In this document: piece after piece, positions 10,049 to 64,000 of the stretch
Position numbering within the stretch: the first letter of the stretch is position 1
How the letters are laid out: the number at the start of each line of letters is the position of its first letter
From: Selaginella moellendorffii
Lineage: Eukaryota > Plantae > Lycopodiophyta
Length of the DNA: 64,000 nucleotides
Reading direction: 5' to 3'
NCBI RefSeq assembly: GCF_000143415.4
Contig: NW_003314333.1
Span: 1-64,000 of the forward strand
Notes under the pieces: generated by a model
Told to the model about the DNA's origin: nothing
Seen by the model: only the letters and a program-made list of their open reading frames with translations
Database searches by the model: none
Translations under genes and position numbers: made by a program

Positions 10049-10076
10049 CTAAACCCTAAACCCTAAACCGTAAACC
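10049..10076 (-). repeat. Short interstitial telomeric repeat (CCCTAAA)n
   Basis: ctaaaccctaaaccctaaaccgtaaacc. Confidence 0.75.
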
Positions 10077-26810: not shown

Positions 26811-27054
26811 CCTCCAAGAACCCTAAATTTATATAGTCGGCTCTTGTATTTTACCAAGCGACCATTGGAAATGAGCAAAGAATTTTCTCTTTAATCATAC
26901 ATGATGATCTGTCAAAGAATACCCTCTTTAATCACGAGGACACAGAATCTACACTCACACTAGTTTCAAACAAAATTGCTACTATTTGCTAGTAGAATTC
27001 CTAGAATCTACACTTAAAGCTTGTTCTAGCACAACACCATGAGATCTTTGTCCT

Positions 27055-27490
27055 CAATTTCTAGACTTTGCTCCCAGCAAGCACATCCAATCCACTGAAA
27101 CTGGCTTGTAAGGCATGCTCCTCACAAGTTCCTCGGCCTCTTCCACACACCCAGCTCGCCCCAAGCAATCCACCATGCAGCAGTAACCTTGCCTCGATCC
27201 TTGGTAGTGGCGAGATGCCCTTCTTGGGCGTGCGCCAAGAACATAATGACCCACAAGTGGCAATCACGTCGCTCCATGGAGTCAAACACTGCTAGCGCGC
27301 GCTGGATCTTGCCCAGCTTGCCATACCGAAGGATGATGAGATTGGAGAGGTAGTAGCAATCGCCAGGCAGCATTTGCTTCTGGGCGATCTCGATCCGGGA
27401 ATGGGCATCGATCGCCTGCAAGGAATTGGTCGCGGAAGTGATGAGATCCACACACTCGGACTTGGACAGCATCAGTTTCTCTCGACACCG
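27055..27490 (-). pseudogene. Internally deleted PLS-class PPR fragment (duplicate of 8255-8690)
   Basis: YGKLGKIQRALAVFDSMERRD and YCCMVDCLGRAGCVEEAEELVRSMPYKP motifs. Confidence 0.78.
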
Positions 27491-27877
27491 AAGCTAGCCT
27501 CTCACGAGATTAGAGAGAAGGGAGAGATTAGGGAAATTCTCGATGGCATCCTTCCAAAGTAGCGCTTCCCGGATCCCCTAGCTTGGTTTGTTCATTCTAG
27601 TGAGCCAACCCATTGCAAAGAGCTTTTCCTAGCTGCCTTCAAACAGTTTCCTTAGGCACTATAGATAGGAATAGAAATAAAGTGTGTAACTTGTGAACCT
27701 TAAAGTGAAATAAAAATGACATTACAAATATGGCAATAGCTAAGCAAACATCTAAACGCAGTTTTGCAAGTGTTTGGGGAGCAATCTTGTTTGAACATTT
27801 ACCCCAAAGATGAATTGGCAAGTAAGATTACTCACCTAGACACCTAAAGTAGTAAGAAACAAATGCATATAAATGAA

Positions 27878-36770: not shown

Positions 36771-37797
36771 GATTCCACTCCTGGAGACGATGCTGAGAAA
36801 GTCGGATGCGAGCAGCGGTAAGGAATGCGATCCTCGGGGAGTTCCTGAGAAAGAGATCCCGAGTCCAGGCATCACATTTTCGTTTGTTGAAATTCACCAG
36901 GATCAGAAGCGGCCGGCTCTGTGGTCACTCTTGTGGCTTTCTTTACACACTCCAGAAGAAAACAAGCTCAAGGACGAGTCTGTGCAACGCTCGCACAAAC
37001 TCGACTGGGCGCAACTGGGAGCTCCAACCAGAGTCCAATCTCCGCTATCCCAGACGAGGTGTCTTTACGTCAATGACGGCGAGAGACTTATCTTCATCAA
37101 GACAAGTTTGCAAGCACTGGTACGCTCTGTGTTCATCAGACTGTCTGTGGGAGAAATTCGTCGGCTCAAGTCAAGCCAACTTACCAAGGTACGTGCCTCC
37201 TGACTATACTATTTTCTGGAATTTTTGTTTTCCTTGCTTAAACGTTGAATTTTGCAGATGGCTGGTGCATAAGCACAGCACGCTATTGTCGTCTCGAAGC
37301 ACTCGCGTTTTATATTTCACGAACAGATACATGTTTCTGATTCAAGCCTTGGATGCATGGTGGGAACACGGGATTTACAGCTCCTCTAAGCTGTGTCCTC
37401 TTATATGAGAGCTTACACTGCGCGACTGGTGCGTATTCTATGAAGTGCTAAGCTCCGCTTTTGCGAATCGTGCAGATTTCCTATCTGCCTCACTTCTGCC
37501 AAAGCTTCACGGCAGATTGAATCTGTACGACCTGGAAGGTGTGTGTTTGGATGACGGAGTCACTGGGATGAAAATCTGGAAGGTGCTGCGTGACCTCTGA
37601 CAGCGTTATATCTCATGGGTGAAAGTTTGCCTTCACTGCTCGGACCTGAATTATGCAGTCTCACTCGAGAGAGTCTGGTAAGTGGCATTCCCGCTGGCTG
37701 TTGGATCCTCCACCGTTGGATCGTACAGATCTAACAGCTCAAACGCTCAGCCTTTGAGTTGCCAGAAATTTCTAAGTCCTAGCACTTGGTTTTTTGG
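35293..37797. repeat. Left arm of large inverted duplication (right arm 61524 to >64000)
   Basis: Near-identical reverse complement; identical 200-aa translations at 36806-37408 (+) and 61884-62486 (-). Confidence 0.97.
37050..37680 (+). pseudogene. F-box-like gene fragment
   Basis: RDLSSSRQVCKHWYALCSSDCLWEKF resembles the C-terminal half of an F-box motif and is followed by short introns. Confidence 0.55.
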
Positions 37798-37919: not shown

Positions 37920-40900
37920 CCAGACAAAGGCGAGACAGTGGGAAGCATCATCGTCAAGAGGAATCCGGGAAGAGTGCACACCAGAAGTGGTGATATCCCC
38001 GGATGGAAAGCAAGAGCCGGAGACAGGATACCCGAAGGTACTGCCGCAGTACTCAAAAATGTCTGTATGTCCGGATGCACCCATAGTCCCGTTCGGGCCA
38101 CCTCCAGTGAAGATCGAGGAGATAATGCCACCAAGGAAGCCCACGAGAATGCCACATGGACCAGCAAACGACGTATTGGAAGTAGACCCGGAAGAATTCA
38201 TGGAGGAATTAAACAAGCTGCAAGCTAGAAGAGCTGAGGAAACAATACATGTGATAGTGGAAGGAGCAGTTCCGGCAGGATTTGTCATGTCAGATTGGGT
38301 GTGTGCGGTGCTGGCGTATCACGACATGTTGGTCACGGTTTTAGCAGAAGATGTGAAGGACCTGGGGGAAAAGTGCTATAATGTGGTGATCAAGGACGAG
38401 AGAACTCGGCACAAGTTGCTGCGAGTGGATGCATACGCACAGTTGGACTTTCAGCTCTTCTTCAGAGCATACCACAACAACTTCACGCCCCAGAAAAAAA
38501 GGATGCTACTCCCGCCATCTGTGATCATGAACTTTGAGCTACATGGCATGGACGTGGCACTGGCAGAAGACAAGATTCTGGCGGCAATACTGAGGTAGTT
38601 TGCTACGTTTATAAGGATGGAAGGAATGCCAGTGGGAGATAGAGTCACGGTTAAAGTCAGGATTCCGAAAGAAGTACACATCCCCTTCGAGATAGAACTC
38701 AAGCCAGGGAAGGGGGAAGTGCCAAGAAGGATTCGGGTTATGTTGTTACCAAACCCGAGCGTGTGCATTATCTGCCGGCGCATGGGACACATTGGGAAAC
38801 ACTGTTTGGTCAGAGGAGCAAGCATGGGGGGAATGCAGGAAACAGGGGAGGACCGATAGAAAGCAAATAGTGGTTCGGAAGGCAAGAAAAGAGGAGCCAG
38901 AGGGGAAAGGGAAACAACAGAGAAAGCGGCCTCCAGCGGAGAAAGCAAGAAGCCTCGAACCAAAGGACTGAAGGAGGAGGGACAAGGGGAGCAATCAACA
39001 GCAGCCAAGCAGGAAAAAGGACAGTCGGGGGCTTCACGAGGGAAAGAATGGAGGCCGACAGGAAGACTTTTTGAAGGACAAGCCGTGGGGGAGGCAAAGG
39101 GACCTGACACAGAAGTAGAGATTGTCCAGGATAAAGGAGAACTGCCACCACAGCAGGCAACATAGAGGGTGCCGGGGCCAGTAGAAGAACAACAGTCGCG
39201 TTCAAGATCAGGAAGAACGGAAGACTTTGCAAGAGGGAACTGTCCGCCAGGATTCACTCCCCCAAGGAGAGCAGTCTGTGAAATAGAGCTCTATGTCAGT
39301 GGAACGAACCCTCCCAAGTTCCTGGGAGAATGGATCGACAACAGAGTTGGATACGCCCCACCGGCAATTTTGATATCGCCCGGACAAGACATAGGCCGGA
39401 CTCTGGAGGATATTCTGGCCTCCAACTTCAACTGGAACCCGCAGAGGTTCTCAATTCAAGAAGACAATTTCATGGAGCAAGCGCCGAACTCGTTCAGGTT
39501 CCAAGGAACGGTGAGAATCCCAATTGCATGGCCACTTCGACCAATGGGACCATACCATTGGGTGGAGAGACAGTGTCTTGGCAGTGCCCAAGGATTCAGA
39601 AATGGTTAACGTCAACGTGAGAACATGGAACGTGGGAGGCCTGAAGAAGGAGAAGTCAGCACTGAATAACAAAAAGACGAAGTTTAGACAGTACCTTAGA
39701 CAAGTAGAAGGTGTGACTCAATGTTTTGATTTCTTGTGTGTGCAAGAGCATAGGCTCTCAAGTATGGACCTGGTTTATAAGTTTACGAAAGGGAAATATT
39801 TCTGGAATCCGGCAGTATCATGTAGTGGAGGCACATTAATAGTGGTAAAAGGCCCGTGGGAATCCCTGGTCGAAGATCATCCAATACTGGTTCCGGGTAG
39901 AGTGCAGTGTGTCCAGTTTAAGATAGGAGATATGTTAGTGGGCCTCATGAATGTGTATGCACCAGCAGGAAGCTCCTCTGAAAGAGCAGATTTCTGGAAT
40001 GAATTGGTACACCAAATACCTACACAACCCTCAACATGGATGGTCACGGGAGACTTCAACTTTGTGGAAGAAGAGCTAGACAAAGATGGGGGAGAGATGA
40101 GAGACAAAAGGACAAGCAGGGAAAGAGCAATGTGGGCACAACTAGTGCTAGCAATGGGCTAGAAGATACGTACAACATCCCAGGTTTTGTACAACACCAG
40201 CCAAGATTCACATGGCAAGAGCACCAGCAACAGGGAATTCAACGAAGACTGGACCGTTTTTATGTATCACCCGAACTGTGTCAGAATAGTGGAAAATTAG
40301 ATATAACAATGGGATATAGAGACTTCTCGGATCATAACTCGGTGTCATTGATGCTTCCCATCTTAAAGAGGTGGGGAACAAAGCGGTATCTCGGAAAAAC
40401 TTCAAGGATGGGAAACTGAATGACTACATAAAAGAAAAGTGGAATCAGCAAGAAGGAGGAGATCTACACAAGTTCACAATCAAGATAGCCAATGAAATCC
40501 GGAAAAAGACACAGAACAAGCGAAGGAAAGTTTTCAAAAAAGTACAAACAATAAGAAGAAATATTGAAGCTATTAAGAGATTGATCAGGTTGGACCCGCT
40601 GGATACATCACTGAGAACTCAGCTAGCAAGAACCAAAGCCCAACTTTTCACCCTGGAAGCGGAAAAAATGGAGGCATTTATAAGGTCGGGGCACCTCAAA
40701 TGGCATATTAGTGAGAATGCACTAAACAAAGAGTTTTATAAGTCCATAAAAGCAAGAGTTACATCCCTGCCAATGTTCGGGCTCAAGGATGATAAAGGTG
40801 TGATGCACATGAGCCTACAGGAGATGCACAAGATGGCTGAGACATACTACCAAGGACTGTTTAGAGCAGAACCGTGGACAGAAGAAAGGAAAATGGCCAT

Positions 40901-43900
40901 GGAGGAAGTTCTTTAGTCGGTGCCCCAGAAAGTAGATGAATCCTTAGCACGGGCCCTGTGTAGAAACTTCACATTGGAAGAGCTAGAGGATGCAATTAGA
41001 GACTTGAACGATGACAAGATGCCCGGGGAAGATGGGATGCAGCCAGCGTACTATAAAGCAAACTGGGAATGGTTGGGGCCAGTAGTGTTGGACACATGGA
41101 AGGAGGTGATGAGAATGGGACAATGGCCCCCAAAAGCCATAGATGGAATAATTGCGCTCATCCCCAAAAAAGGAGGGGATGCATCCCTAATCAAGAACTG
41201 GAGACCGATATCGATGCTAAATACACTATACAAGATAGTAGCCAAGGTGCTAGCCAAGAGATTAAGGCCGTTATTGCCAGAGACGATACATGACACTCAG
41301 AATGGATTTGTGGAAGGAAGACAACTGGTGGACAACATCTTGACAGTGCTGCTCACACAAGAACAAGTCAAAGACCAAGGATTAGAGATGGCAATAATAC
41401 TCCTGGATTACGAGAAGGCATATGACAGAGTAGACTGGGAATTCCTGCAAATGACAATGAGGAAGATCGGCATCCCAGAAAAGTTTATAGGATGGACGGC
41501 CACCTTATACCAAGGCGCATCAAGCAAGGTCACAATAAACGGGACAGTGGGGAACACGATCAAGCTGCAACGGTCAGTAAGACAAGGGTGTCCACTAGCA
41601 CCGTTTTTATTCCTGTTCGTGGCCGATGCTTTAGCACACTATTTGGCAAGGGCGGACGGGCCGGAAGGGCTGGTATTGCCTGGGTGCAGAGACTCACTAC
41701 AAGACCTGGCAGGGACAGCGGAAAGGCAGTTGAAATCCAGTGCCTTCACAGATGACACAGGAATCATCACGTCAGGCTCCCCGGAGAACATGAGCAAGGT
41801 CAAGAAGGACTTGGACTTCTTCAACCTGGCAGCTGGCTCAAGAATAAACTGGGGAAAATCGGTGGGAATATGGCTGCCGAGCTCTGACCCACCAAATTGG
41901 GGGAGTGAGTGGGATTTTAAGTGGCTGAAACAAAGAGAAACAACAAGGTACTTGGGGTTCCAAATAGGCCAGGCATACGACCCCCTCCCACAGAATCAAA
42001 AAGCAGTCGAAAAACTCAGAGATCAACTGAAATTTTGGGCGTCACGAAAGCTGTCCTTCTCGGCAAGATGTGTAGTGGCGAATAATATAGTGCTAGGGGC
42101 AATCTGGTTCCTGGTGGCATCATGGAACTTGGACAAGAAGATGCTAAAAGAAATGAACAAGCTCATCAGGACATATGTATGGAAGAGTATCAAGAGGAGG
42201 GGCAAAGATTGGATGGAGCTCGGTCACAAGAGCAAAACAGGATGGGGGGATAAACATAATAGATATAGAGGAACAATGCAAGGCAATGCAATCCAATGCA
42301 GTTGCTATTCAAAATCTTTCACCGAATGAACATGCCCGGAAACCAGCCATGGAAACTCCTACTACGCCACCAACTGCTCAAAGTCATTCCGGACAGACTA
42401 GAACACACGAGGCAAAACTGGGAAAAAGATGAAAGGTGGCTGTTCACGGAAGGTGTGCTGAAAATGCCAAAACCAAATACATTCTCTGGGAAACTGTTCA
42501 GATTGTGGAAAGAATTCAAGAGCAAGATGGAAAAAAGAAAACCGACAAACACCTACGAGTTGGACCGACAACCAATATTTCTTAATAAGCTATTTCAATA
42601 TAAGGGGAAATATTTGGGGGAAACAGCGGACAAAGGAATAGACAAAGTATGCCGGGACCTTCACAGTTCTGGGATGAGAACATTTGCAGAAGCTGACTCG
42701 ATGATAAAAGTGGGGGAAACAAAAATGAACAGAGATAGACTAAAAGCTTTCTACAGGCTGGAAATCTCGGCACACAGGCTGAAAAAGTTCGAAACAGCCT
42801 TTGAATACGCATGAGGGAACTGCAAACAGAGCATTAGGGAAGTCAGAGAAACGACACCAGCATGGTGGATAGCCGAGGAAAAGGTGATATATACGGCAAC
42901 TCAAGACCAGGCAAAATGTTTTGTTTTCGAAGTCGGGGTGGCTGGTAGACTATTACCATACAAGGTGCCCGAGGAGAGCCTACGACCGGACATGTCAAGA
43001 GCAGAGCCAATACGAGTTATACGGATAGATAAGAAAACAGCATCAATGGACCCGACAATAACAGAAGGCCAAGTAGCTAGGATGTACTGGTTCAGGCAAC
43101 AAAAATTAAGCGAGCTGGCCTGGGACCCGACAGAATGGAATTGGCAGGGAAGGAAAAAGGAAGAATTTTTTGCTTACGAACCAAGACTGGGGAGAAGGCT
43201 CATTTGGCCATGCAGTGACTCACTACTGGTATCAAGGATGAAACGAGCCAACATACAGGACAAGTCACAACAGGCGATATTGAAAGAACTATGGAAAGGA
43301 CAGTGGGCAGCAAAAACAAGATACTTCATGTGGTTGACAATGCAAGACTGGCTACCATCTAAACGGAACATACACCTCTTGGAGCAAACTTGAGATAAAT
43401 GTGGAGCGAGGGAGACACAAAGGCACATACTATGGGAATGTGAAAGCGCACAAGACGTGTGGAGAAGCATGTGCTGGATGCTACAACAACACTCCAAAAG
43501 ACAAGTGTGCCTCACATATGAAGCGGCAGTGTGGGGCGAAGCTGCCGCAGGAATGCGAAATGGAACAGACTCTTGGAAATGGGCAGCAATAGAAGAAGGG
43601 GCACCATGGTTTGATCAGCTCAACACAACTCGAACAGACATAGAAGGAATTCCAACAGAGATAGTGGACCTATTATGAGGAATTACAATGTGGGAAGTAT
43701 GGAAAGCCCAGTGCAACAGAATCTTTAATGACAGGGAAGAAGGACCAAGGGTGGTGGCGTCATGGGTGTGGACTAGAATGATAACTGCAGCAGCAGCCCG
43801 TGTCCTACAACTGGAAAATAGAGGAGGGAGAAATGGTCCAGAAAAAGCAAAAAAAGAAGCATAGATCTGGCATTTTTTATGGAAGCAAGGGGAGGCAGGT

Positions 43901-44110
43901 ACTCGGGAATGGAGGTGGACACCACCGGACGAATGGTTAGAGGTGACGCATCTCAAAAGACCTTCGGGCGCCAGTTCATGAGCAACCCCCCTTTCTGTAG
44001 GTACTTCCATTGTAGGCTCCTCTAGATAAAGGCTCTTTGCTGGTTTTGTGCCCAATGAAACCATGCCCAGTTTTTTTGGTTTTTTTCTGGAAAATAAAAG
44101 GCCCCGTTTA
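37920..44110 (+). mobile_element. L1-clade LINE (family A), essentially full length, inactivated by stops and frameshifts
   Basis: ORF1 with CIICRRMGHIGKHC. ORF2 from ~39602 with TWNVGG/QEH/NVYAP/GDFN/RLDRFY/SDH (APE), NWRPIS/LDYEKAYD/QGCPL/FTDD (RT), and CGARETQRHILWEC (zf-RVT). Confidence 0.92.
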
Positions 44111-44125
44111 ACCAAGTCGGACCAG

Positions 44126-44341
44126 ATGTTTTTTAGAGGAAGAAGCGAGGCTGGAGAAGAAGAATGGATGTGGAAACCACCAATATGGATTTGGCAGCAC
44201 ATGTTCAGGAACGACGGCACGTGTACCTCCCCAAGTCGACAGAGTTCAACACCAGGAACATTGGAAGCTGGAGGATTGGAGGTCACGGACTTGAGTACCA
44301 GTTCTACTTTGTTCCCCTCGTCACACCCCCCCTAAAAAAAA
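44126..44341 (+). mobile_element. 5'-truncated 3' end of LINE family B, directly upstream of a full copy
   Basis: 44126-44259 matches 51785-51917, then continues to a C-run and short A tract (44334-44341). Confidence 0.8.
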
Positions 44342-45075
44342 TCTTGAAGAGCTCTTTCCGGGTTTCGAGCATGTCGAAATCAGACTCTATGGTTTATAGA
44401 GGATAAATTAATTAAAACCCCATTGACAAAGTCAGACCAAACTGCAGAAAGTGTCATGGCAAGGGGCACACAGGTATGGACTTCAATCAGTAGTTCCACC
44501 TCCAAATCATTTTTCACCTGGTCGAGAGCATCCCTCCCCAAGAATCCATGCTCCGCCCAATCGAAAATTTCTTCCCGCTCAGACAAAGCCCATGCGAGAA
44601 ATGGCTAAGTCCCAAGCACGGTCAGGATCGTCCGAAAAAAGATCCAACGGCCTGGAGCAGACAGCGACAAACACCAAAAAATCACACACAAGGATGACAA
44701 TACACGCACCGAGCCGATCAGCGTCACAACTATTGGATCGCGAGAGGCAAGCTCCAACCGAAGGATCTGCTGCCTCTCCCACGCACAAGTCCCAGCCACG
44801 GCTAAGATCAACTGTGGCAAGATCGCACGGTCCAGAATGGGTGGGAAAGATGACGAAGGAAAAGAAAAATGACGTCACCATCCCCCACGTGTCACCAGGG
44901 AACACTCCCCCATGTCGCCATCACCCCGACAATCATCAAGAGGGCAGTTAAGTGTACAGACTGCCTCGAACCAACACAATGTACGGCGGGAGAATCGCCA
45001 AGATCGCGATACATCATCAAAATCCAAGGCGAACTTAAGAGGGAGCACGTCCATTTAAAGGGGTCAAAATAAATG

Positions 45076-45106
<31 letters not shown>

Positions 45107-48100
45107 AAGAGCAGTGGCAACAACCCTAGACTTGCCCTTGCCCGGAAAAGTTGAATCGTGTTCGCGAGCGGCTGGAGAGCAGAAGAAAACAAACAGAAAA
45201 GAAGAGGAGCATCACACCAGAAACCAAGAGGTCTGTTCTCCTCCCCACCCCCTTGCTCCCCGGTTAGTTTCCTCTCCACCCTCTCGATCACACGCTGACT
45301 TCTCTCCCCTCCCTTCCCCACGGCTTGATCCCCCACACGCCTCCCCCCACACGCCCCCTTCTCCGACTCAAAAAACTGCCAGCAGTACCTAAACAGAACC
45401 ACCGCATCATCCTCGAGGAGTAGCGTTGATCCGTGAACTCTTTGCTGAACACAGGACCAGAACAAAGAAGGAAATGCCGCGTACAAAGAACATGCAAAAA
45501 CGAGGTCCACCACTGGAGGACAAACGGGAAGATCCCCCCCACACGGACACGACTCAGAACACCCCTGATGACGAGGAGAGAGCTGCGGCAGAGCATCGAC
45601 CAGAAACGAGAAGCACGGGGATGAAGCTCTCGATCAAGCTCAAGCAGTGCCCACTGCCGCCCCCGAAGGACAACGAAGCTGCGGAACCAGAACTAGAGGC
45701 AGATGCAGCCCAAGCCCCCCCGCCCCGGCCAACAACAGCAGCAAAAACAACTAGAGAACCGACTCGAGCTGCTCCCTCCTCGTCCACCAACACAGCCAAT
45801 ACCACAAAGAAGAAGAAACCGACTGCGACGGGGGGCAAAAAATCAAAGGGAGTTTCAGAGGCCTCGTCTTCCAGGCAAACAACTACCCCTCCGCCGAACA
45901 CAACACCGCCGGTCAGGGCGTCTGCGCTTTAAAGGATCCCATCGGTCTCAGCTTTGGAAGGAATTGGCAAGTATGTAGATGAAACGCTGGAGGACACGCC
46001 ACAACAGACCTCACCCGGTTCACACTCTTCCTCACCGGGTTTGAGCACGCTGTTCATGGACACACAGCAGAGGGAACGAGTCATCCAAGCGACGACAGAG
46101 GAGAAGCAGGGGAAAGAGGTGGACTTGGAGGGCAACCAGATCGAAAAGACCACCCCAGCAACCACCAAGGCTCCAGAAACACCAGCTTTGAGAGTTTCGA
46201 CCGAGATCAGCAAGGAGAAAGCAATACCAGCCGTCCCGCTCAAGAAGATGAAGGAGTCGGACGTACTCTATCTCGGATGGACAAGGGTGGACAAGCTGTA
46301 CATGGATGTGGAGAAGGCTGTCTCGCCCCGTTCAGCTGCTGCACCGGCAATGTCGGACGTCACAGCACCAGTCCCAGGAGAACTACAAGTGGAGGCAAAT
46401 GAGGTCCTCGTGGAACTGCAGGAACGACAAGCCAAGGCAGCCAAGAACTTGATCCTGGCAATCTTTGAAGGGAACAAACTGGACCGGCAAGTAGCATTGG
46501 AAGGGCTCGAGGAAGGTTTCAAAGAGGCAGGAGTGTCGTTCTGGGGGAGACCAGTCACGTTCCTCAGCCAGAACTGCTACAGCGTGGAGGTGAGCACGGA
46601 GAAAAACCAGCGAGCCCTGGTCCTCAAGCAGAGGGTGACGAGACCAACACACGAGTTGTTCTTCTACAAGTTCCCACCAGGATTCTCTCTGAGCCAGAAG
46701 GACTTGGTTCACCGCCCAACAATGGAGCTGGATCTAATCGTCGAGGACCTGTGTGAGACAGACAACACCCCGGTGTTCCTGGTAATGATGGTGGAGGGCT
46801 TCACACAGTACCTAGGGAAACGGGTGACAAGGGAGGAGTCAAGGGATCAGCTCATCCACGTTCTGTACACTGGAAAGGCGCCAATCCCTAACAAGATCCG
46901 GATCATGGGGAAAGTGCACCCGATCCATATCCAGGAGTCTAGGATGACACCCCCAGAAGCAGCGACACCATCTAAGCTGATGCAGGACCAGGAAAAGAGA
47001 AGGAGAAGCCCATCGGCTCAAGGAGGAACATCTAGGAGACAGTCCGACAGAGCGTCAAAGCGCAAGGAAGAAGCACTGAGGGCCGGACAAGCTTCACCTG
47101 AGATGACAAGAGACCAACGCTCCCCATCCCTGGAACGAGCACAAGTGGAGAGATCCCCGTCAGAGGACCAGGTGCCGAGAGGGCAGGCGTCCTCCTCCCG
47201 ATGATTCATGCGACTCAAAGTCAACTTGTGGCTCCACGTAAGCAGCACACGTCCCCAGAAGTACCTAGCACTATGGAGCGGCCCTCCGGTTGGATATGTC
47301 ACCCCCACATTCCACATGGCGCGCGATCAGCTCCCAGAGAATGGAGTACACAGCTTTCTGGAAGCGTCCAAGGTAATCAAGGATCTTAAGTACCGTGTGG
47401 AAGTAGACAAGGCCACAATCGTGGGCAACAACATGGAGCTGTACGCAGCCCTTCTCACCAAAAGTGGTGTCATCCCCACGAGAGGAGGGAGAGATCGTGA
47501 ATTCTCGTGGGTGGAACGCAATCGGATCACCACAAACATGACTGATCTCAGCGTGCTGTCGTGGAATGTAGGAGGCATTAGTAAGGATGGAGTGCTATGG
47601 AATGACAAGAAGGCGAGGCTACGACAGTACCTTCGCCAGTTAGAAGGAGTGATAGGAAAGTGTGACTTTTTCTGTTTCCAGGAGCAAAGAATGCAAGAAC
47701 ACCAGACAATCTTTAAGTTTTCACAAGGTGAACACTTCTGGAACCCTGCAGTTGGAAGGCGAGGAGGAACCCTCATCATCGCCAAAGGACCATGGCAATC
47801 CTTCGGCACCTCGCACCAAATCCTAATCCCTGGACGTGCTCACATGATAGTGATAAAAGTAAATGCCTGAACCATAGGCCTGTTGAACATCTACGCCCCA
47901 GCATCCTGCTCCACCTCACGAGCACACTTCTTCTGAGTTCTGCAACGTCGCCTTCCAACAGGAATCGATGATTGGATCCTGGCTGGTGACTTCAATTTCA
48001 TGGATCACGAGGAGGATAAACGGGGAGGCATAATCCAGGATAGATGTACACGTGTGGAATGCCTTGCATGGAACTCATTCCTCTTACAAATTGGCACCTG

Positions 48101-51100
48101 CGACGCTTACGAGATCCCGGGTTTTGTGACACATGAACCACGCTTCACATGGCGAGAACGTCAACACAGAGGCTTACAATGTCGTCTGGACCGCTTCTAC
48201 CTCACCATGGACCTGTGCATGCAAGGGGGGAAGTTGGACATCGACAACACTTACACGGACTTCTCGGACCACCATCCGATTAGACTCACACTTCCCTTTC
48301 GAAGATCAAGAGGTCCAAGGAGCCAGTTGCCATACCCAAGAAGTTCTTTGAGGAGCAAGCCAACAATAACCGGGCGCACGAGCAATGGAAGAAACACAAG
48401 GGGAACCTACACTCCTTCACCCTTCAAATCGCTCAAGAGGCTTGAGCCAAGATCCAGAAAGATAGGAGAGGTGTCTTTAACACAGTCCAAAAGGTTCGGA
48501 GTGTCCTAGCCTCAATCAACACTCACCTTCGCAACCCAGATGACCCATGGCTACAAGCTCAAAAAATTCAGGTTAAGCACCAGCTGGAAAGGATAGAGGC
48601 CAACAAGATCAAAGCCTTCCTAAAAGCAGGACACATCAGATGGCACGCAAGTGAGCTCGCGCTGAACAAGGAGTTCTATCAATCCATAAGATCTAAAGTG
48701 GTCTCCCCACTGATGTTCGGATTGAAGGACGAACAAGGGCAATTGCACACAAAGATCAACAACATGCACAACATGGCAGAACACTACTACTCCCAGCTTT
48801 TCAAAGAGGAACCATGGGATGAGGTCAGGCAAGAGAAACTTGAGCGAGTGCTGGAGCATATCCCAACCAAGTACACCCCAGCAATGAACACCAGAGTAAC
48901 GAGACCTTTCACGCTGCGAGAATTAAAGGATGCCCTGGATGACCTCCAGGATGACAAGATGCCAGGGGAGGATGGCATGCCACCAGCCTTCTACAAACAA
49001 AACTGGGAATGGATCAAACCAGAAGTTCTCAAGATGTGGCAAGAAACCATGCGAGCTGGGAAGTGGCTGGAAGGAGCTATGGATGGGATCATTGCGCTGA
49101 TACCAAAGAAAGGAGATATGTCCCACCTCAAGAACTGGAGGCCCATCTCTATGCTGAACACCATGTACAAGATCGTAGCAAAAGCCTTGGCATCACGCCT
49201 CAAACCTCTGCTCCCAGAAATGATCAAGGAGACGCAGAACGGATTCGTGGATGGCAGGCAAATCGTGGACAACCTCCTAACAGTCCTGCTGGCGCAAGAA
49301 CACACCAAAGACATGGCAAAGCAGATCGCAATCATTCTCTTGGACTTCAAAAAAGCCTACGACCGGGTGGATTGGAAAGTTCTTCAGGCCATAATGATCA
49401 AGCAAGGAGTTCCTCTGCAGTTCATGGAATGGATAGCATCCCTATACCACTCGGCATCGAGCAAGGTTACAATCAATGGAACCATGGGACAGTCCTTCAA
49501 ACTTGAAAGATCAGTCCGACAAGGATGCCCCCTCACACCATACCTGTTCCTGTTTGTTGCGGATGCTCTGGCCTACTACCTCACCCGACCAGAGGGCCCG
49601 AAAGGTATGCCCCTTCCAGGCTGCGGCTCTGCTCTTCAGGACATGAACAAAGCCTCAAAGGAGGACCTCCTATCCTCAGCCTTTGCAGACGACACAAGCC
49701 TGATCGTGGAGGGATCACCGGAGAATCTCTCAAATCTCAAAAGGGACCTGGACTTCTTCAATGAGGCCATGGGATCAAAAATAAATTGGCACAAATCAGT
49801 AGGACTATAGCTCCCCCCCGGCAGACCTCCAACATGGGGCATGGAGCTGGGTTTCAAATGGCTGGACACGGAGGAGACCATCCGCTACCTTGGATTCCAA
49901 GTCGGACGCCAGTATGATCCAGAACCTCAGATCCAAAAAGCAGTAACAAAACTAAGGGATCAACTCAAGTTCTGGGCGAGCAGAAAACTATCATTCTCAA
50001 CACGCTGCGTGGTGGCTAACAGCATCCTGCTTGGAGCGATCTGGTTCTTGGCAGCATGCTGGAACATGGACAGGCAAACGATCCAGGAAATGAACCAACT
50101 CATTCGAACCTATGTCTGGAAAGGCTCCTCCTGCGTGTCACGTGGTGGAGCAAAGGTCAACTGGCGGTCAGTAACACTTCCGAAGCACAAAGGGGGCCTC
50201 AATATTATTGACATTGAAGAACAATGCAAGGCTCTCCTCTTCAAGATTTTCACAAGGATGCTCATGCCTGGCAACCAACCATGGAGAATACTGTTGCGAG
50301 CACAACTTTTGAAAGTCCTCTCGGACAGGAACGAGCACACCAGACAAAACTGGGCGATAGACGAACAATGGCTCTTCTCAGACACCAAACTCAAAATGAC
50401 AAAGGCTCACACATTCTCAGGAAATCTGTTCAAGCTCTGGAGGCAATTCAAATGCAAGCTGGAACGCAAACCACTTCGTACCAAAGAACAACTGGACCGG
50501 CAGCCAATTGTCCTGAGCAAACTCTTTTCTGTCAATGGTAAAATCCTCGGAGCTTCAGAGGATCGCGGCCTGGACCAGACATGCAGAGACCTACATAGAG
50601 CAAGGATGAGAACCTTCACAGAGGCAGACACCATGATCCAGCCCAACCAGACGGCTAACAACCGTGACCGAATCAGTGCCTTCTACGGACTAACCATCTC
50701 GGAACACAGGATGCATAAATTCCAAACAGCCTTTTTAGCAGCCAAACACGCATGCCTTGAACGACTAAACCTGCAAGAAGATCAACACCATCGATGGTGG
50801 AAGGTGGACGAGTCGATCGTATGCGCCCTCCCCAACATGGCATCGGGACTAATCTTTGAGGCAGGACAGGCTGGATTTTTGTACCCCATCATCACCCCCG
50901 GGTACGAGGACCTCCCCGATATGAGCAGAGCTAAACCGATCAGAGTGATTCAAATGGACAAAAAAACTGCTAAGGTTGATCCATTGATCCCAGAAAACCA
51001 ATATGCTCGCCTCTACTGGTTCTGCCAACAAACCCTGGATGAACTCAAGTGGGATCCCGCAGAGTGGCATTGGAGAGGAACCACGTGCAAGGACTTCTTC

Positions 51101-51917
51101 CAGTACGAGACCAAGCTGGGCCGAAAACTGATCAAGGTGCCGACTCGATCCTCCCTCATCCGGAAAGCAAAGGCCCAACAGATCCACTCCAGGAACCACT
51201 CACACTGCATCGACAAGATCTGGAAGGGGCACTGGTCAGCTAAGAACCGCTACTTCATGTGGCTGGCCCAACAAGAATGCCTTCCCTCTCTAGCGGCCAT
51301 ACATCTTCCGAACACAGCCTGCAAGACCTATGGTGCCACAGAAACACAGCAACACATCTTATGGGAATGTCCAGCAGCATAGGAAGTATGGGAAGGTGCA
51401 GCAGCGGTACTCAAACGAACGTCATCCGGAGGCACTACAATCACATATGAATGAGTGCTCTGGGTAGCTTCATCCAGGGAAAAACAAAGAATCCTGATGC
51501 TTGGAAGTGGAGACACAACGAGGCCCCACACTTTGATCAACTCAACCAAACTCGGACACACATTAAGCATCTCCACCAGGAGCTCTTCGATGTGCTTTGG
51601 GGATGCACACTAGCAGAGATATGGAAGGCTCGCTGCGCCAGGCTGTTCGAGGACACGGACCCCTTGGCTTGAGCAACTATCTCAAAGGTTTGGTCCAGAA
51701 TGATCGTCTCACTCGCGGCCCGCCTGGACACACTGATCAAACGAGACGAGGAAGGGAAAATAGCGAAGGAGAAGGACCTGTGGCTGTTTTTTAGAGGAAG
51801 AAGGGAGGCTGGAGAAGAAGAATGGACATGGAAGCCACCAATATGGATCTGGCAGCACACGTTCAGGAACGACGGCACATGTACCTCCCCGAGTCGACAG
51901 AGTTCCACACCAGGAAC
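44342..51917 (+). mobile_element. L1-clade LINE (family B), near full length, 3' end replaced by telomeric repeats
   Basis: ORF1 pieces 45426-47204, APE from ~47538 (SWNVGG, QEQ, GDFN, RLDRFY, SDH), RT 48698-49810 (FADD), C-terminal region and zinc finger to ~51900. Confidence 0.92.
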
Positions 51918-51920
51918 TTC

Positions 51921-51973
51921 GGTTTTAGGGTTTAGGGTTTAGGGTTTAAACCCTAAACCCTAAACCCTAAACC
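51921..51973. repeat. Head-to-head interstitial telomeric array (TTTAGGG)3TTT|AAA(CCCTAAA)3
   Basis: Perfect palindrome 51924-51971 centred at 51947/51948. Confidence 0.97.
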
Positions 51974-53122
51974 TCTGGGCTTGTTCGTCAGGTCCGACAA
52001 GCACCTATGGGCAAACGTTAGTGTCCGGAGAGGCAGCTCCTTGTTCAGCCCTAGGACCACAGCTGAACGGTCTGACTCCTTGGAGATCTCCTGGCTTGGT
52101 TGTGTCTCTAAATGAGGGATTGTGAACTCACCTTCTAGTGAGGCTTCCATGTTGAGCCTGCAGGACAGAAGTGCATCCCCACTGGTGTTCTGTTCCCCTC
52201 TGTTTTTGGACATTCTGGGTGGGGCAAACTTGAGTTCTCCTGACCCATGTCCTGGCTTTGCTGCTGCTGCACGTGCTACTACTCTGGTGGTGACCCCTAA
52301 CCTGACCCTGGTGTGCCGCTCTTGGACTTCTGTGAGACAGCCAAACCTGTGGATCCCCTTGACGGTGAAAGTACTCGGGATGATTCCCCGCAAGCCTTCC
52401 TGACTTGTAACTGGCCCAAGACCCTCACGAAGCTCTTGAACTCTAGCCAGTGACCAAGCAAGTGGGTGAGGGGAAGTAGCTTTGTCCTCTCCACCACTCT
52501 CGGCGGGCACCTCATCTCTGGCGTGGCTTTTACTTCCAGCTTTTTCTAGGACCTGGCCATCCCCCAGCCCTGAAACATCCACCACTTCTATCCCATGGTT
52601 CTCATCCTCTGCTGGGTTGCTGCCTTGCGTGGCTCGCTTGCTGCCTTGCACACTAGTGTTCTGGCTGTTGATACAGAGGGCCCTTTCCTGTCCTGGCTTG
52701 CTGCTGTGTGTGTGCCAGAACCCCAACCTTGCAACAGTCCTTGTGGGAGTCGAATACTGAGGTCCCTACCTCGCCCTCCACGACTTTGAGAGCTCAGTTT
52801 GGTGGGCGTGGATGCTGTGATTCCCCTGTGGCTGTTCTCCATGCTGCTAACAGGAGAGTGAGTACACAGTAGAAACAAGAAAAGGGGAACAATGCTTCCC
52901 TGAATCTCACGGCAGAAGCCCCCGCCGACAGTAGCAAGTGTGGGGAGATTGCACGCTCTCCCCTGAGCGCTCTTCTACCTCAGGCTGCACCTCCGATCAT
53001 GGCAGCCATGGTGCTGGGTGCCTTCCACCACTTCCCCTCCAAAAAACGTCCAACATTAGGGTCCGCGCCACTGCGAAAAATCAATCTGGCGAGATCGCTG
53101 AACGTGTATGTACATTCCCCAT
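51974..53122 (-). mobile_element. Inverted 5' segment of LINE family C
   Basis: Reverse complement is homologous to 2455-3128 + 3719-4189. Confidence 0.88.
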
Positions 53123-53189
53123 GCGCACGGAGAATGAGGATTGCACAAAGTGGTGCCGCGATCTTGCCGGATTGTCGGGTACGAACGTC

Positions 53190-55404
53190 AATCCAGAAGT
53201 GGGGTCCCCGGAAACTCGGCTTGCCAGCGAGAGTGGTAGTCGCTAGGAGCATCATTCTGCCCGGCATCTGGTACCACCTCTCCATCTGGCCTGTTCCAGA
53301 ACGCACTCTTAGAAAGGTACGCACGATGGTCCGTCAGTATTTGTGGCGGGGCGCTCTGGTCACAGGGAGGAGCATGGCCAAGGTCGCGTGGCAATCTACA
53401 GCACGTCCGCGAGTCTTGGGAGGACTTGGAGTAATCGATCCAAGCGACATGGCGAAGGCGCTACGGTACAAAATCCTCCTCATGGGCCTTCAACCAGGTA
53501 ATCAACCTTGGAGACTCATGTTTAGGCAGAACTTGTTGGCAATCCGGCCCAAGCACAACACTGCAAGACCGTGGGAAGAAGATCCACGTTGGCTCTTTGC
53601 CGAGGGGCCGAAACAAGTAGTCAAGGGCGGCACTCTAGTCCAGGGGTTTCTTCGGTTATGGAGCACGTTTCCAGTCAGCAGGGAATTGCCAGGGCGAGCG
53701 GAGGACTGGCTGAACCAGCCCCTGTTCTTCAACGACCTCTTCAAACTGGATGACAGGACGCTGGGCAGGGAGGACCACTACACAATCTGGAGAAAGCTAC
53801 ATAGCGCAGGCTTCCGAACTCTCAAGCAGCTGGTGCGGGTTCTGGACAAGGACAGGAGGAAGACTACGAGGCATATGCAGGTCTTTAACCCGGGACGGTG
53901 GAGGAAAGTCCACCTTGATCTTCTTCGCATTATCAGAGCTGTGAGTGAGGCGAAGCAGGGGCAGCTCTGGCCTAGGCGTTGTCTCAAATCTGGAGACTTT
54001 GTGGCTCTGCAACGGGACGTGGAGCCAGACAGGGAACGAGTTAGCTTGGGGGCCTGGACACGGGCGTTTACGGCCCCAACACCAGCTTGGGAGGACAGGG
54101 ATGTGGAGGTATGGTTCGTTGTGTCTCCAGACCAAAATGTTGGGCGTCCTTTTCGAGTCTTGAGAGGCGACATGCTGTTGCCAGCAGGGGACGAACAGGT
54201 CATGCCGATGGTGACGGATGACGAGGTCAAGGGTAGGATTCGAGTAATACGACAGGCTCCGAAGCAGTCGGTGGTGGTTCAATCATTGGCAGCACTAGAG
54301 GGGGAAGGCATTCTTAGATGGTGGCGACAGCAGCTCATCGAGGATCTGGATTGGGACCCCGCAGCATGGAAACGAGGAGCGAGAAGCTTCTTCTCCTTCA
54401 GCGTCAAGGAAGCAAGGGATGGTCTCTTGACCGGCAGGGAGGAGGCCCGAGGGGAGATCCCCAAGCTCTGGAAGAAATGGATCGAGCAAGGAGTTGAAGC
54501 TAATCAGGTGGTGGGCAACACGCTTGCGTTCTGGAAACTACCGGTACAGGAGAAAGTCAAGGCCACCTCTTGGTTGGTGGCAAATAACGGGCTGCCGGTA
54601 GGACAGCGGTTCCAGGAAGAAGCATGCCGACGGTGCAAGGAGTGTGGCGAGCTGGAGACAACGCGACATGTCCTATGGGAATGTGACATGGCAAGAGAAG
54701 TTTGGCGACAGATCTTCAAGGCAACGCAGGAACTCGGCGACATTCCAGAGTTTGAGGCTCGGAGTGGGGATATCCTCCACTGGTTTGAGGGAGCTAGAGG
54801 CCCAGCCATTGGTCCAGCTTGGAGGCGTATTCGCTGCTACGGACGGCACCAATGGAACATGCGAGTCCGGTGGGACGTGACAGGGGCTGAAGTTGGGATG
54901 TCCATCTGGGAGGCGTTGGGCCATGAGCGCTGGTCCATTTGGAGGGCAACAAGACTGCAGGCACTTTGGGAGGCACGGAACCACTGTCGCTTTGATGGGC
55001 AGCAAGCGAGAATATCGGCAGTGGTGGTATCATGGTGGAGACTCACTCTTGCAGCGGTGCATCTTCACTACACCATCCTGAAAGAGCAGGCGAAACCGAG
55101 GCAGCTCGAGGAGTGGAGATCTAGGTGGCTCCCATGCTTCGGCAAATTGGGAGGTGGCGAGATTCGCTGGCAGTGGCGCCCCCCAGACTCTGTTCTAAGA
55201 TCAGCTCATGGGGGAGACTTGGACATCGACATGATTCGCTCGAGACGACCACGTCCACTTCTACTCCAGGACTAGGTCTAGCTGCGGCATATGAGGATCA
55301 CGTAGAGTAGCTCATTGAGAGGGCGGCATGCCAATTTTTTGTATTAGTCCCATTGGGACATGGGGAATGTACATACACGTTCAGCGATCTTGCCGGATTG
55401 TGGG
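53190..55404 (+). mobile_element. 3' part of LINE family C ORF2 (post-RT region and zf-RVT, open to TAG at 55273) plus 3' UTR
   Basis: KLGLPARVVVARSIILPGIWY, KVAW...GGLGVID, CKECGELETTRHVLWEC, LWEARN motifs; ~695 uninterrupted codons. Confidence 0.88.
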
Positions 55405-55408
55405 TCAG

Positions 55409-56978
55409 GAGCGCTGGTCCATTTGGAGGGCAACAGGATGGGAGGCTCAGAACCACTGTCGCTTTGATGGGCAACAAGCGAGAATATTGGCAGTGGTGGC
55501 ATCATGTGTAAGGAACCAACTCGCCGAGGTGTCATAGGCTAAAGGAACCCCGAAAGCATGACCAAAATGACAAAGAGTTCATCGGATGGGACCAAGTCGA
55601 AGATCGAGTCCAAGATCGACTCGGAGATCGAGTTCGAGATAGAGTCCGAAATCGAGTCCGAGGCCGACTCGGGGACCGAGTTTGAGACCGAGTTCGAGAC
55701 CAAGTTCGAGACGGAGTCCGAGATCCGAAATCGGGTCCGAGACCGAGTCCGAAGTCGAGTCCGAGGTCGGGTCCGAGATCGGGTCTGAGATCGAGTCCGA
55801 GATCGAGTCCGAGACCGAATCCGAAGTCGGATTCAAAATCGAGTCCGAGATCGAGCCAGAGACTAAGTCCAAATACTAATATGGGTCGAGGGGTGAAAGC
55901 CCAAAGCATGCGTCTCCCAGGGGGGGGGGGCTGCAGGGGGTTCCAAAAGTATAGTAGGGATAGTGAGGTCCAGGAACCAGTTTTGAAGGGACTCTCCAGT
56001 GGGGCTCCCAAACTGACTTGAGGTTGAGATTGGGACTGAGGGGCCTTGGGTGGGAGTGAGCATGGACTTGGCTGGTGCCAGAGGGGCCATCCAAGGAAGT
56101 GCTCAAGAGCAGCTCCCACTCCCGAATGGGAAACTAATTGCAGTGCTCCCGGCTCATGCGGAATGGTGCCCCACTTGAGTACCATGTGGCTCATTGGTCC
56201 TCGCCCTTCCTAGGGGCTTGGGCCTTCCTTCGGGATGGAAGTGGGGGGGTAGAGGTACCCATACCGGGCCACTAGGCCACGGTGTTTCGCCCCAGTGTCC
56301 CGAAGCAAGTGTTGCACTCAAGACTTGGGATTTAGAGGGTCCCATGATCAAGTCTTGTGGTACTAAGGGATGTTAGGAACCTGGAAGCTTGGTGTGCTTG
56401 GCTGCTTGTGCTTGCGGGGAGTGTAGCCGAACCTTAAGTCCAGTCTAACCCGGGGAGGGGGATTGCGAGTGATTTGGGAATCCATGGAAGGATGGCTAAC
56501 ACTCCGTTGCTCGTGTAGTGAGTAGCTGAAACCAAGTAGTAGCTGGTACCATAGGCGAGAACTTTGGCAAGGGAACTTAGCAAAAGCCAAGGTAGTGTTG
56601 GACGGATAGACGAGGTAAATTAGCAAATTGGAAGGGAAAAATTTGTGGCTTACATCATGGTGGAGACTCACTCTTGCAGTGGTGTGTCTTCACTACACCA
56701 TCCTGAAAGAGCGTGCAAAACCGAGGCAGCTCAAGGAGTGGAGATCTAGGTAGCTCCCATGCTTCGGCAAATTGGGAGGTGGCGAGATTCGCTGGCAGAG
56801 GCGCCCCCCGGACTCTGTTCTAAGGTCAGCTCGTGGGGGAGACTTGGACATCGACATGATTCACTCGAGACAACCACGTCCACTCCAGGACTAGGTCCAG
56901 CTGCGACATATGAGGATCACGTAGAGTAGCTCATTGAGAGGGCGGCACGCCCAATTTTTGTATTAGTCCCATTGGGAC
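55409..56978 (+). mobile_element. Second tandem 5'-truncated copy of the LINE C 3' end, interrupted by a solo LTR
   Basis: 55409-55506 + 56655-56978 duplicate 54925-55359. Confidence 0.88.
55507..56654 (+). mobile_element. Solo LTR (1148 bp, family Y)
   Basis: TGTAAG...CTTACA ends and perfect TSD TCATG (55502-55506, 56655-56659). Confidence 0.9.
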
Positions 56979-57454: not shown

Positions 57455-57945
57455 GCAGGGAATATTCTGAGAATATTCTAACGTTGACCGTTGATCCCTA
57501 AACCCTAAACTCGGTCAACAAAAAGACTGTCAAGGAATATTCGGGAATATTCCATTCTGACCGTTGACTTCGCGTTGACCGTGCGTTGACTCGAATGGGA
57601 GGTGGCCTGGAGTGACTGGTACGTACCCGAGGTCCCTAATCAGTCATGCAGAGACGCCCTTTGCCCGCAACATGTTGGCATGTGTGTCGTCGATGTCGCA
57701 TGGCACCATTATAAGATTCGCAAGCTTTCCAAGGTGTGGTGTTCATCGTTAGGAGATGAGACCAACGTAGTCACCCTTGGAAAGAGGTGCAGAATCAAAT
57801 GGTGTAGGCCTTGTTGACTCGGTCAACCATCTGACTGTTGGGGAATATTCAGGAATATTCTGGTTTTGACAGTAGACTGAGCGTTGACCGGGCGTTGACC
57901 GGTGGGGGACGACCTGAGGTGACTGGGACATACCTAGAGTCCGTC
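57455..57945. repeat. Degenerate ~310-bp repeat rich in GTTGAC and GGAATATTC motifs, with (CCCTAAA)2 at ~57496
   Basis: 57510-57635 is similar to 57818-57942. Confidence 0.65.
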
Positions 57946-58170
57946 AGCCAGACCCTGAAGGTCATCAGTTACGTGGAGGAGGATGCAAATGTATCCTTCC
58001 GTCTCTTGTAAAGCGCAGTAGAAGACATGGCTAAGCTCGCAAAGCGAGTTTAGCCCTGACCAGGAACAAACCGGGGTTCGGGAGGCATCTCCAGCATGTG
58101 ATCACTCAGGGGAGTGCATCTGCGAGAGCTTCATCCATCACCTATTTAGGGTTTAGGATGCCCCCCAAGC

Positions 58171-61523: not shown

Positions 61524-64000
61524 CCAAAAACCAAGTGCTAGGACTTAGAAACTCAAAGGCTGAGCGTTTGAGCTGTTAGATCTGTACGATCCAACGGTGG
61601 AGGATCCAACAGCCAGGACTCTCTCGAGTCGGACTACATAATTCAGGTCCGAGCAGTGAAGGCAAACTTTCACCCATGAGATATAACGCTGTCAGAGGTC
61701 ACGCAGCACCTTCCAGATTTTCATCCCAGTGACTCCGTCATCCAAACACACACCTTCCAGGTCGTACAGATTCAATCTGCCGTGAAGCTTTGGCAGAAGT
61801 GAGGCAGATAGGAAATCTGCACGATTCGCAAAAGCGGAGCTTAGCACTTCATAGAATACGCACCAGTCGCGCAGTGTAAGCTCTCATATAAGAGGACACA
61901 GCTTAGAGGAGCTGTAAATCCCGTGTTCCCACCATGCATCCAAGGCTTGAATCAGAAACATGTATCTGTTCGTGAAATATAAAACGCGAGTGCTTCGAGA
62001 CGACAATAGCGTGCTGTGCTTATGCACCAGCCATCTGCAAAATTCAACGTTTAAGCAAGGAAAACAAAAATTCCAGAAAATAGTATAGTCAGGAGGCACG
62101 TACCTTGGTAAGTTGGCTTGACTTGAGCCGACGAATTTCTCCCACAGACAGTCTGATGAACACAGAGCGTACCAGTGCTTGCAAACTTGTCTTGATGAAG
62201 ATAAGTCTCTCGCCGTCATTGACGTAAAGACACCTCGTCTGGGATAGCGGAGATTGGACTCTGGTTGGAGCTCCCAGTTGCGCCCAGTCGAGTTTGTGCG
62301 AGCGTTGCACAGACTCGTCCTTGAGCTTGTTTTCTTCTGGAGTGTGTAAAGAAAGCCACAAGAGTGACCACAGAGCCGGCCGCTTCTGATCCTGGTGAAT
62401 TTCAACAAACGAAAATGTGATGCCTGGACTCGGGATCTCTTTCTCAGGAACTCCCCGAGGATCGCATTCCTTACCGCTGCTCGCATCCGACTTTCTCAGC
62501 ATCGTCTCCAGGAGTGGAATCTGGTTCACCACTTCCAGCTGTACCGGGCCTTCTTGGAAGCAAGTTAATGTGAAGATTACGTCTGTCGGAAGATGGTCTG
62601 TGACTGGCGAGTAGAACTTGTACACAGGCCAACCTGCAGAGACGTAGAACAAAAGAAAGAATACCAGATGAATTCCATCAGCAGCAGTGTTGGTGACCCG
62701 GACTCGGTACGTTTTACCTCCATTCCTGCGTAAGGAGTGAACGATTCGAACAGACTTGTCAAGGAACGGCTCCGTTTCTTCACTTCGAGCGTTGGAACCC
62801 GTTTCATTAGAGCCGCCGGTGTTCCTGTCTAAGGATATTGACAGGATAAACACTAGTGACAGAGAGAACCATTCAGTAGCATGTACAGAGATTACCTCCC
62901 TGGTCGAGGGTAAAACTGTGATATGTGGACCTGTGGGAACGTGTACTCTCGTATTAGTTCCATGATCCTGTCAAAATCCTCTGATGTTTCTCCTGACAAG
63001 GATAAAAGCTCAATAAGATACAATCTTTTTCATGCATGCGAGTGTACCTGGAAATCCACAGATAATATCTGTAGCGATATGAATCTCCGGGACTAGTCTT
63101 GTGAGAGTATCCACAATTTTTCTAAACTCGGAAAACGTGTACTCCCTCTTCATGCCCTGAAGAACACAGAAAACAGCTTACAGAGACAAAACAATCACCC
63201 AGAACATCGGTACCTCCAACACCGAGTCCCTTCCAGATTGAACCAGAACATGAAGGAACGAATACACGCAGGGGTGACAGCCATTTCCTCCAGATGCTGT
63301 AAGATGTAGATTCGGAGCATTGTACTTCTGTCTATGAGGAAGCGCGGCAACTAAAGCACGTAGAAGCGCTGGTATATTTGCTCCAATGTCTCGTCCTGTA
63401 GTGCAAAGAAAGAAAAAAGTAAATAAAAAATGCCAGCTTGAAACAGATAACCATAACCGTAAGCTCCAGTGTCGCCATATCTCCTTCACACCTTCAGACA
63501 CCACGGTTTTCAATCTTTGCACCTGTAGATAAAGCTCAGTAACAGAGAAAAGAAACTGGCGAAGGTCCTTACTAGTGCGTCTACTGTGTAGCTGCCAAGA
63601 TACCCGCAAGCATGCTTCGTCTTGCAGTATGTGCAAGCACCCAAGCAGCCAACGTTGATAGCCATGATCTTGACAAACTTGTTCCTACGAACCTGAAAAC
63701 ACAACAGCAAAAGAGATTATAAACTTTTGGCAAATCAAGAGACGGTAAAGCATCCCGTCGACCCAGCCAGGCCTCGTGGCCTTTCAAAGTCTCCCCTGCT
63801 GTATTTGCTGCACTCCGATGACGCTGACGGCTTCGAGATCTTTTAAACCCTGAGGAACGCATCCAGCTATCCACCAAGGGAATAGAGGCCGCTTTGCCTT
63901 TATGTATCAGTGTTTCCATTGTTGGAGCTTTCACAGTACACCTGTGAATAAAACAGCAGCAACAATTGATCCAGCTTAAGATTCTTCCTTCTGATACTGA
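61524..64000 (-). pseudogene. Right arm of inverted duplication: CDKAL1/MtaB-type pseudogene (~62520-64000) and F-box-like fragment
   Basis: Reverse complement of 35293-37797; [16 protein letters not shown] at 63510-63710. Confidence 0.92.

Follow-up and report, generated by a model that had tools for sequence, protein, structure and literature searches.

A head-to-head telomere-repeat palindrome between two broken LINEs in Selaginella moellendorffii as a likely scar of break repair

How did two short arrays of telomere repeats come to lie back to back in the interior of a Selaginella moellendorffii sequence, and do they mark a place where two chromosome ends once fused? We examined this question in a 64-kb stretch of DNA, the whole of which we call the window. 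A preliminary description had reported a perfect 48-bp palindrome, and direct reading of the sequence bears this out: positions 51924-51971 read (TTTAGGG)3TTT followed by AAA(CCCTAAA)3, 24 nt on either side of a TTT/AAA centre at 51947/51948. The G-rich tract T(TTTAGGG)3TTT (51923-51947, + strand, 25 nt) is succeeded by a second tract of 25 nt at 51948-51972, which reads AAA(CCCTAAA)3C on the + strand and G(TTTAGGG)3TTT on the − strand. The + strand order across the site is ..ccaggaacttcgg, T(TTTAGGG)3TTT, AAA(CCCTAAA)3C and then tctgggcttgttcg.., placing 3.5 exact telomeric units on each side of a centre that is internal to the window. The symmetry of the arms is lost one position beyond the palindrome, where T stands against G. 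Telomere 14-mers match the window 9 times against 0.04 expected, and exact telomere tracts of at least 11 nt occur at five places in the window compared with 0-1 in shuffles. As single-stranded DNA, the palindrome region is predicted to fold into a hairpin of −25.3 kcal/mol (z = −6.7).

The left flank consists of LINE B, an L1-type element with broken ORFs on the + strand (44340-51922, 5′ limit approximate), which is delimited by its domains, the tail of a related element and the ends of contigs. Domain matches on the same strand locate its Exo_endo_phos (APE) at 47208-47870, RVT_1 (RT) at 48698-49810 and zf-RVT at 49841-51382. The related L1-type LINE A (37921-44338, + strand, limits approximate) retains a 3′ tail (44127-44338) that reveals the part missing from B. 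Positions 44127-44259 of this tail are 93% identical to 51785-51917 of LINE B, and LINE A then goes on through ..ccaggaacattgg into aagctggagg.., about 75 nt more beyond the break point of B. In other genomic copies of the B family, contig ends continue from 51920-51922 with AAGCTTGGAG.., and the homology of LINE B extends to 51922 (..ccaggaacttcgg). B is indeed truncated where the LINE A copy continues, as first described, but the LINE A tail and the B-family contig ends put its end at 51922, five bases past the 51917 given originally.

To the right of the palindrome, 51973-53123 holds the first ~1.15 kb of LINE C on the − strand (5′ cassette, 5′ UTR and the start of ORF1), cut after ..CCCAGAG and 80-90% identical to intact copies. 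The segment is an inverted copy, at 80% identity, of 2455-3128 plus 3719-4192. These positions belong to a + strand sibling (2432-7250, delimited by sequence comparison and tblastx) that runs continuously past the equivalent of the break point, 4189, into ORF1 and APE-like sequence. By tblastx, 6601-7171 of the sibling resembles the APE domains of LINEs A and B, and because this + strand sibling continues into APE-like coding sequence, C is a LINE read on the − strand. Four intact copies are available, namely the window copy at 4189 and those at L001, L124 and L125, which are loci of S. moellendorffii GCA_000143415.2 found via homologous proteins. All four continue from ..CCCAGAG into CTTCACTCCC; their consensus reads ..AACAAGCC(C/T)AGAG up to the break point and C(T/C)TCACTCCC after it, and the window changes to repeats straight after ..CCCAGAG. 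The continuation of the sibling at ~4189 had already been recognized and stands, but by the four intact copies the homology of LINE C ends at 51973 (..aagcccagag) and not at ..aagcccaga.

Head to head with C lie two stacked, 5′-truncated 3′ parts of LINE family C on the + strand, D1 (53176-55403) and D2 (55401-56978), which together span 53176-56978 by sequence comparison. Positions 53176-55403 of the window have a counterpart at 97.8% identity in a D-family copy on GL377641.1, and the protein matches all come from S. moellendorffii. Look-ups of five window ORFs as exact proteins found no match, and searches by homology led to paralogues or to nothing. Five loci of this species with paralogous copies at 68-98% identity (L001, L002 and L123-L125) contain no head-to-head junction. 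Members of the C/D family carry the same ~45-nt sequence (..atggggaatgtacata..gcgatct.gcc.gatt) at both the 5′ start and the 3′ end, beside a small hairpin (gtcccattgggac). This terminal sequence is found at 53083-53190, 55360-55410 and 2176-2500 of the window, at 8000-8070 and 9720-9770 of L001 and at 9724-9766 of L125. Copies are stacked head to tail, as with D1 and D2 in the window and with D then C in L125, and at two window loci the full 5′ end of C is head to head with a 5′-truncated D. The sibling of LINE C stops abruptly (~7250) at the edge of a 1.6-kb direct duplication (7253-8867 and 26100-27662, 91% identical) that includes a molybdate-transporter (MFS_MOT1) coding piece.

On both flanks, the sense strand of a 3′-truncated LINE leads into G-rich repeats. 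The sense strand of B is the + strand and that of C the − strand, in agreement with the original claim that the G-rich strand prolongs the 3′ end of each broken piece. LINE B breaks off after ..CGG and LINE C after ..GAG, both of which resemble seeds, but the first repeat of each tract departs by one letter, with TTTT in the left tract and GG for GGG in the right.

Several other kinds of junction can be set aside. The preliminary description had itself raised the possibility that the palindrome is a fixed internal part of a multicopy element; this is ruled out, as the palindrome is absent from four other C copies, from the LINE A tail and from the B-family contig ends, all of which run past the break points. 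Retroelement priming on a G-overhang gives a sense strand followed by CCCTAAA (PMC8557442). Both sense strands here lead into G-rich repeats and lack ribozymes, an Rfam search having found no hammerhead or Penelope-type terminal units in the window, which rules out a Penelope-type or otherwise G-overhang-primed junction. Insertion of a telomere-repeat-specific LINE of the SART/TRAS type needs an intact 3′ end at the repeats, and B is without its last ~75 nt and C has only its first 1.15 kb. A palindrome formed by sister-chromatid joining or fold-back is likewise ruled out, with symmetry that stops one base past the repeats and flanks that belong to different LINE families.

The sequence records two DNA ends, one in LINE B and one in LINE C, each with ~25 nt of TTTAGGG repeats on its 3′ strand, joined back to back. 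We regard it as fairly likely that this junction is a short head-to-head interstitial telomeric sequence (ITS), the scar of a break that was repaired after telomerase had extended both ends. At each break, a seed of G, GG or AG would let telomerase lengthen the 3′ end by about three and a half repeats. The two G-rich tails would then pair at TA, the sole self-complementary dinucleotide in TTTAGGG, giving the TTT/AAA centre, and gap filling and ligation of the strands by end joining would complete the repair. Tails ending in ..GGGTTTA and paired over TA would give exactly GGGTTTAAACCC. We infer telomerase as the enzyme, TA as the site of pairing and one local event as the source of both ends. 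The earlier proposal that two healed ends were joined here agrees with the polarity, with how cleanly the elements break off and with the G/AG that resembles a seed at each junction, and the role that it gave to telomerase is likewise a putative one. About 75 nt of sequence is missing from B and at least ~3.1 kb from C, the latter being the length carried by the sibling past the break point. The event therefore involved a deletion between two breaks, wide resection of one break or the joining of two separate breaks. Former chromosome ends are unnecessary for it.

Similar junctions are common in metagenome contigs. JGI metagenome contigs scanned for two G-rich units, 0-14 nt and two C-rich units yielded at least 120 loci, representing at least 104 (with 50-nt flanks) to at least 109 non-redundant junctions depending on the flank-length filter. 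Recurrence at least 104 times in unrelated contigs indicates a frequent local repair process and not a rare karyotype event. Among the matches listed, junctions lie internal to contigs of up to 107 kb with a contig GC of 27-63%, and the arms of 104 junctions have median lengths of 21 and 20.5 nt. TTTAAA is the commonest centre, present in 13 of the 109 junctions listed as compared with 2.2 expected under a random arm-end phase (p = 4e-7); three of these 13, among the matches listed, have equal arms. Unselected further junctions in 703 kb of contig sequence number ~10 in the G-to-C order and 1 in the C-to-G order, a small count drawn from loci that were chosen for one G-to-C junction. Such an excess of G-to-C order is what addition to 3′ ends predicts. 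At least one listed locus, L043, has telomere-like inverted arms with a 13-nt spacer (7030-7086) in a phage contig (Phage_capsid ORF at 1132-2487), so not every match to the pattern is eukaryotic and the comparison set is not purely one of eukaryotic telomere biology. In viral contigs, neither the G-to-C nor the C-to-G pattern was found.

The flanks of these junctions are mostly unrelated to each other: 84 of the 104 listed, about four in five, are without a long shared flank repeat. A direct flank repeat of at least 11 nt accompanies 14 of the 104 (null rate 0.45%), and about ten of these look like real duplications of 12-35 nt. At L032, L094, L102, L018 and L051, the junction lies between direct flank duplications of 25-35 nt that resemble long target-site duplications. 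Duplications of this length fit staggered breaks at which both 3′ tails were extended; L094 may be the unit of a tandem array. Inverted flanks are seen at 6 of the 104 junctions listed (~5%). At L044/L092 and L089, the palindrome reaches 13-36 nt into the flanks in inverted orientation, making these true fold-backs around a telomeric centre. Of the 104 junctions listed, 22 have arms whose lengths differ by no more than 1 nt, which is not above random pairing (permutation p = 0.46), and perfect symmetry as a special signal is ruled out, equal arms not being enriched among the junctions listed.

These comparisons bear on each of the other ways in which the Selaginella junction could have arisen. 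One is that its 50 nt are filler without any action of telomerase, captured or copied from telomeric DNA while a deletion was being closed by end joining. Extrachromosomal fragments could have supplied it, or template switching that included a fold-back step. Filler DNA is common in plant end joining. Two arms of exactly 25 nt that together make a perfect palindrome are what copying of one arm by fold-back would produce, and the true fold-backs among the ~5% of listed metagenome junctions with inverted flanks (L044, L089) are examples of such a product. A fold-back copy should nevertheless continue into the inverted flank, and the flanks here are unrelated. Equal arms are not enriched in the comparison set, and its strong G-to-C bias is unexpected from the random capture of double-stranded telomeric fragments. 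We therefore judge the filler explanation to be unlikely.

The reading that had been offered first, a telomere-telomere fusion point like human 2q13, would have long-standing healed or eroded natural chromosome ends joining at a later time, in a karyotype fusion or a dicentric-derived rearrangement. Head-to-head polarity is the signature of fusion, and the 5′ ends of D1 and D2 face the palindrome, which is the polarity of terminal retroelement arrays. An inverted duplication with an F-box exon, 96-100% identical between its arms, also flanks the site, as paralogous subtelomeric blocks would. Its left arm (35293-37794, + strand) is 14 kb from the palindrome, and its right arm (61526-64000, − strand), which runs past the window end, is 10 kb from it. 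Against these likenesses, tracts of 25 undegenerated nucleotides each have nothing like the length expected of a once functional telomere, they directly adjoin broken interspersed LINEs in place of subtelomere, A and B on the left arm are oriented the wrong way for a terminal array, and hammerhead or Penelope-type units are absent by the Rfam search. The same small structure is moreover common elsewhere, making a rare event unnecessary. On the length of the tracts, the nature of the flanks, the lack of terminal arrays and the recurrence of the structure, the claim of a 2q13-like fusion is not upheld, and we consider such an origin quite improbable.

A further candidate is an error of assembly or cloning, by which the junction would be absent from the plant. 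In its favour, public sequencing runs hold 17-29% of sampled window words as short Logan contigs, none of which was seen to bridge 51.9-52.0 kb in a comparison with 5,001 letters of the window; the high contig depth there is due to contigs of pure telomere repeat. Perfect palindromes are also known to cause trouble in cloning and in certain long-read libraries. Two different elements as flanks are nevertheless not what a simple read fold-back would give, an assembler would not be lured into joining telomere-ended contigs by arms as short as 25 nt, and equivalent junctions lie deep within numerous independent contigs, up to 107 kb in length. We think it quite doubtful that the junction is an artefact. 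Finally, it is highly improbable that retrotransposition made the junction, with one or both LINE pieces reverse-transcribed from a C-strand 3′-OH at the edge of a telomeric tract by internal or twin priming and the 3′ gaps as priming sites: C (antisense, full 5′ end) has as its neighbour D1, a sense-strand 3′ part from its own family, which is reminiscent of twin priming, the C/D1 head-to-head topology is seen again at 2176-2465 and S. moellendorffii LINEs stack at a common terminal cassette, but the tract end is not complementary to either element at the junction, C and D1 are set apart by 34 nt of filler and a cassette remnant of 18 nt, B would have to have undergone an equally odd event of its own in mirror-image position, and no RT, APE or integrase similarity was found at any of the metagenome loci examined, among the matches listed.

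The remainder of the window contains further rearranged and repeated sequence. Within the inverted duplication, a 200-aa ORF with the F-box exon is identical in both arms, and an 82-bp piece (36680-36761 and 62531-62612) matches in direct orientation inside the otherwise inverted arms, indicating a small internal flip. A C-rich telomere tract of 15 nt at 57496-57510 lies exactly where the homology of two ~120-nt repeat units (57509-57627 and 57817-57934) starts, adjoining palindromic GTTGAC..GTCAAC motifs. More short telomere-like tracts occur at 10049-10069 and 58145-58157 of the window and at 5293-5305 of L125; the tract at 58145 is probably native to its repeat, because a counterpart sits in the repeat unit of a paralogous S. 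moellendorffii locus. A Ty3/gypsy-type element with gag, protease, RT, integrase and chromodomain occupies 18372-22915; its LTRs are probably two near-identical repeats of 270 nt, at 18011-18280 and 23209-23478. Units like GAGACC/GAGTCC make up arrays of 12-nt (and 23-nt) period that are common to several places (16278-17160, 31038-31300 and 55572-55890), one of them inside LINE D2. No tRNAs were found in the window.

Taken alone, the Selaginella locus would represent an old break plus a deletion or rearrangement between two LINE copies, which is modest as a single locus, and its palindrome is unfit as evidence for chromosome fusion. For annotators, a head-to-head telomere motif is by itself no mark of an ancestral fusion. 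The recurrent, polar and TA-centred class among the metagenome contigs is a more useful outcome than the locus itself. It leads us to propose, tentatively and at a little under an even chance, that head-to-head 'telomerase scars' are left behind widely, and in a form that can be counted, when organisms with TTTAGGG telomeres, such as plants and algae, mend ordinary breaks; the Selaginella palindrome would be one instance. Such scars would carry about three repeats per 3′ end, a preference for TA pairing that results in a TTTAAA centre, and sometimes a 12-35-nt duplication of the flank. If this is true, genomes keep a readable record of telomerase at internal breaks, with the ratio of G-to-C to C-to-G junctions as its measure. 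Should genome-wide censuses bear it out, the part that telomerase plays in mending internal breaks in TTTAGGG lineages is frequent enough to give rise to a class of scars that has so far been described, as far as our literature search goes, for a handful of vertebrate loci. In the same limited search, we found no description of a head-to-head scar class for plant-type repeats.

Among systems already described, vertebrate short ITSs are the closest in kind. In work of the Nergadze/Giulotto group, head-to-head short telomeric stretches at break-repair sites are known from two mouse lemur loci and one Xenopus locus, which make up 3 of 41 TERC-ITS loci (PMC8537989), and a horse locus has head-to-head short interstitial telomeric repeats (PMC7215372). 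Telomerase has been proposed to work at either side of the break in head-to-head ITSs, and the term 'fusion ITS' is kept for sites of the 2q13 type (PMC8537989, PMC7215372). Like the Selaginella junction, these vertebrate loci have few exact repeats, head-to-head stretches and unrelated unique flanks, and some show a deletion or duplication at the site (PMC8537989, PMC7215372). They differ in having TTAGGG repeats, in many cases with a fragment of the telomerase RNA, and in being proven by empty orthologous sites, whereas the Selaginella junction has TTTAGGG repeats in a lycophyte. Human 2q13 shares with it the head-to-head order of G-rich and then C-rich arrays and the inverted duplicated blocks on both sides, which here are 10-14 kb off. 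The arrays at 2q13 are degenerate and much longer than 25 nt, with recognizable subtelomeric domains alongside and a known synteny break. Unlike 2q13, the Selaginella junction has 25 exact nucleotides per side set straight onto broken LINEs.

Two retroelement systems offer partial parallels. Short telomere tracts between retroelement pieces are also a feature of the endonuclease-less, Penelope-like Athena/Coprina elements, which dock on telomere overhangs (PMC8557442), but in those elements reverse-complement repeats and a hammerhead come after the sense strand. In Selaginella the sense strand leads into G-rich repeats, both LINEs lack their 3′ ends and the Rfam search finds no ribozyme. In Magnaporthe, de novo telomere addition from seeds of 1-4 nt takes place onto truncated MoTeR retroelements (PMC7367193), which resemble the Selaginella pieces in that a truncated retroelement is capped by repeats on its 3′ strand. 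MoTeR caps are terminal and become working telomeres, whereas the Selaginella caps stayed at ~25 nt and were joined to each other internally. On the favoured reading, the junction adds a lycophyte case with the plant-type repeat to a known kind of repair scar.
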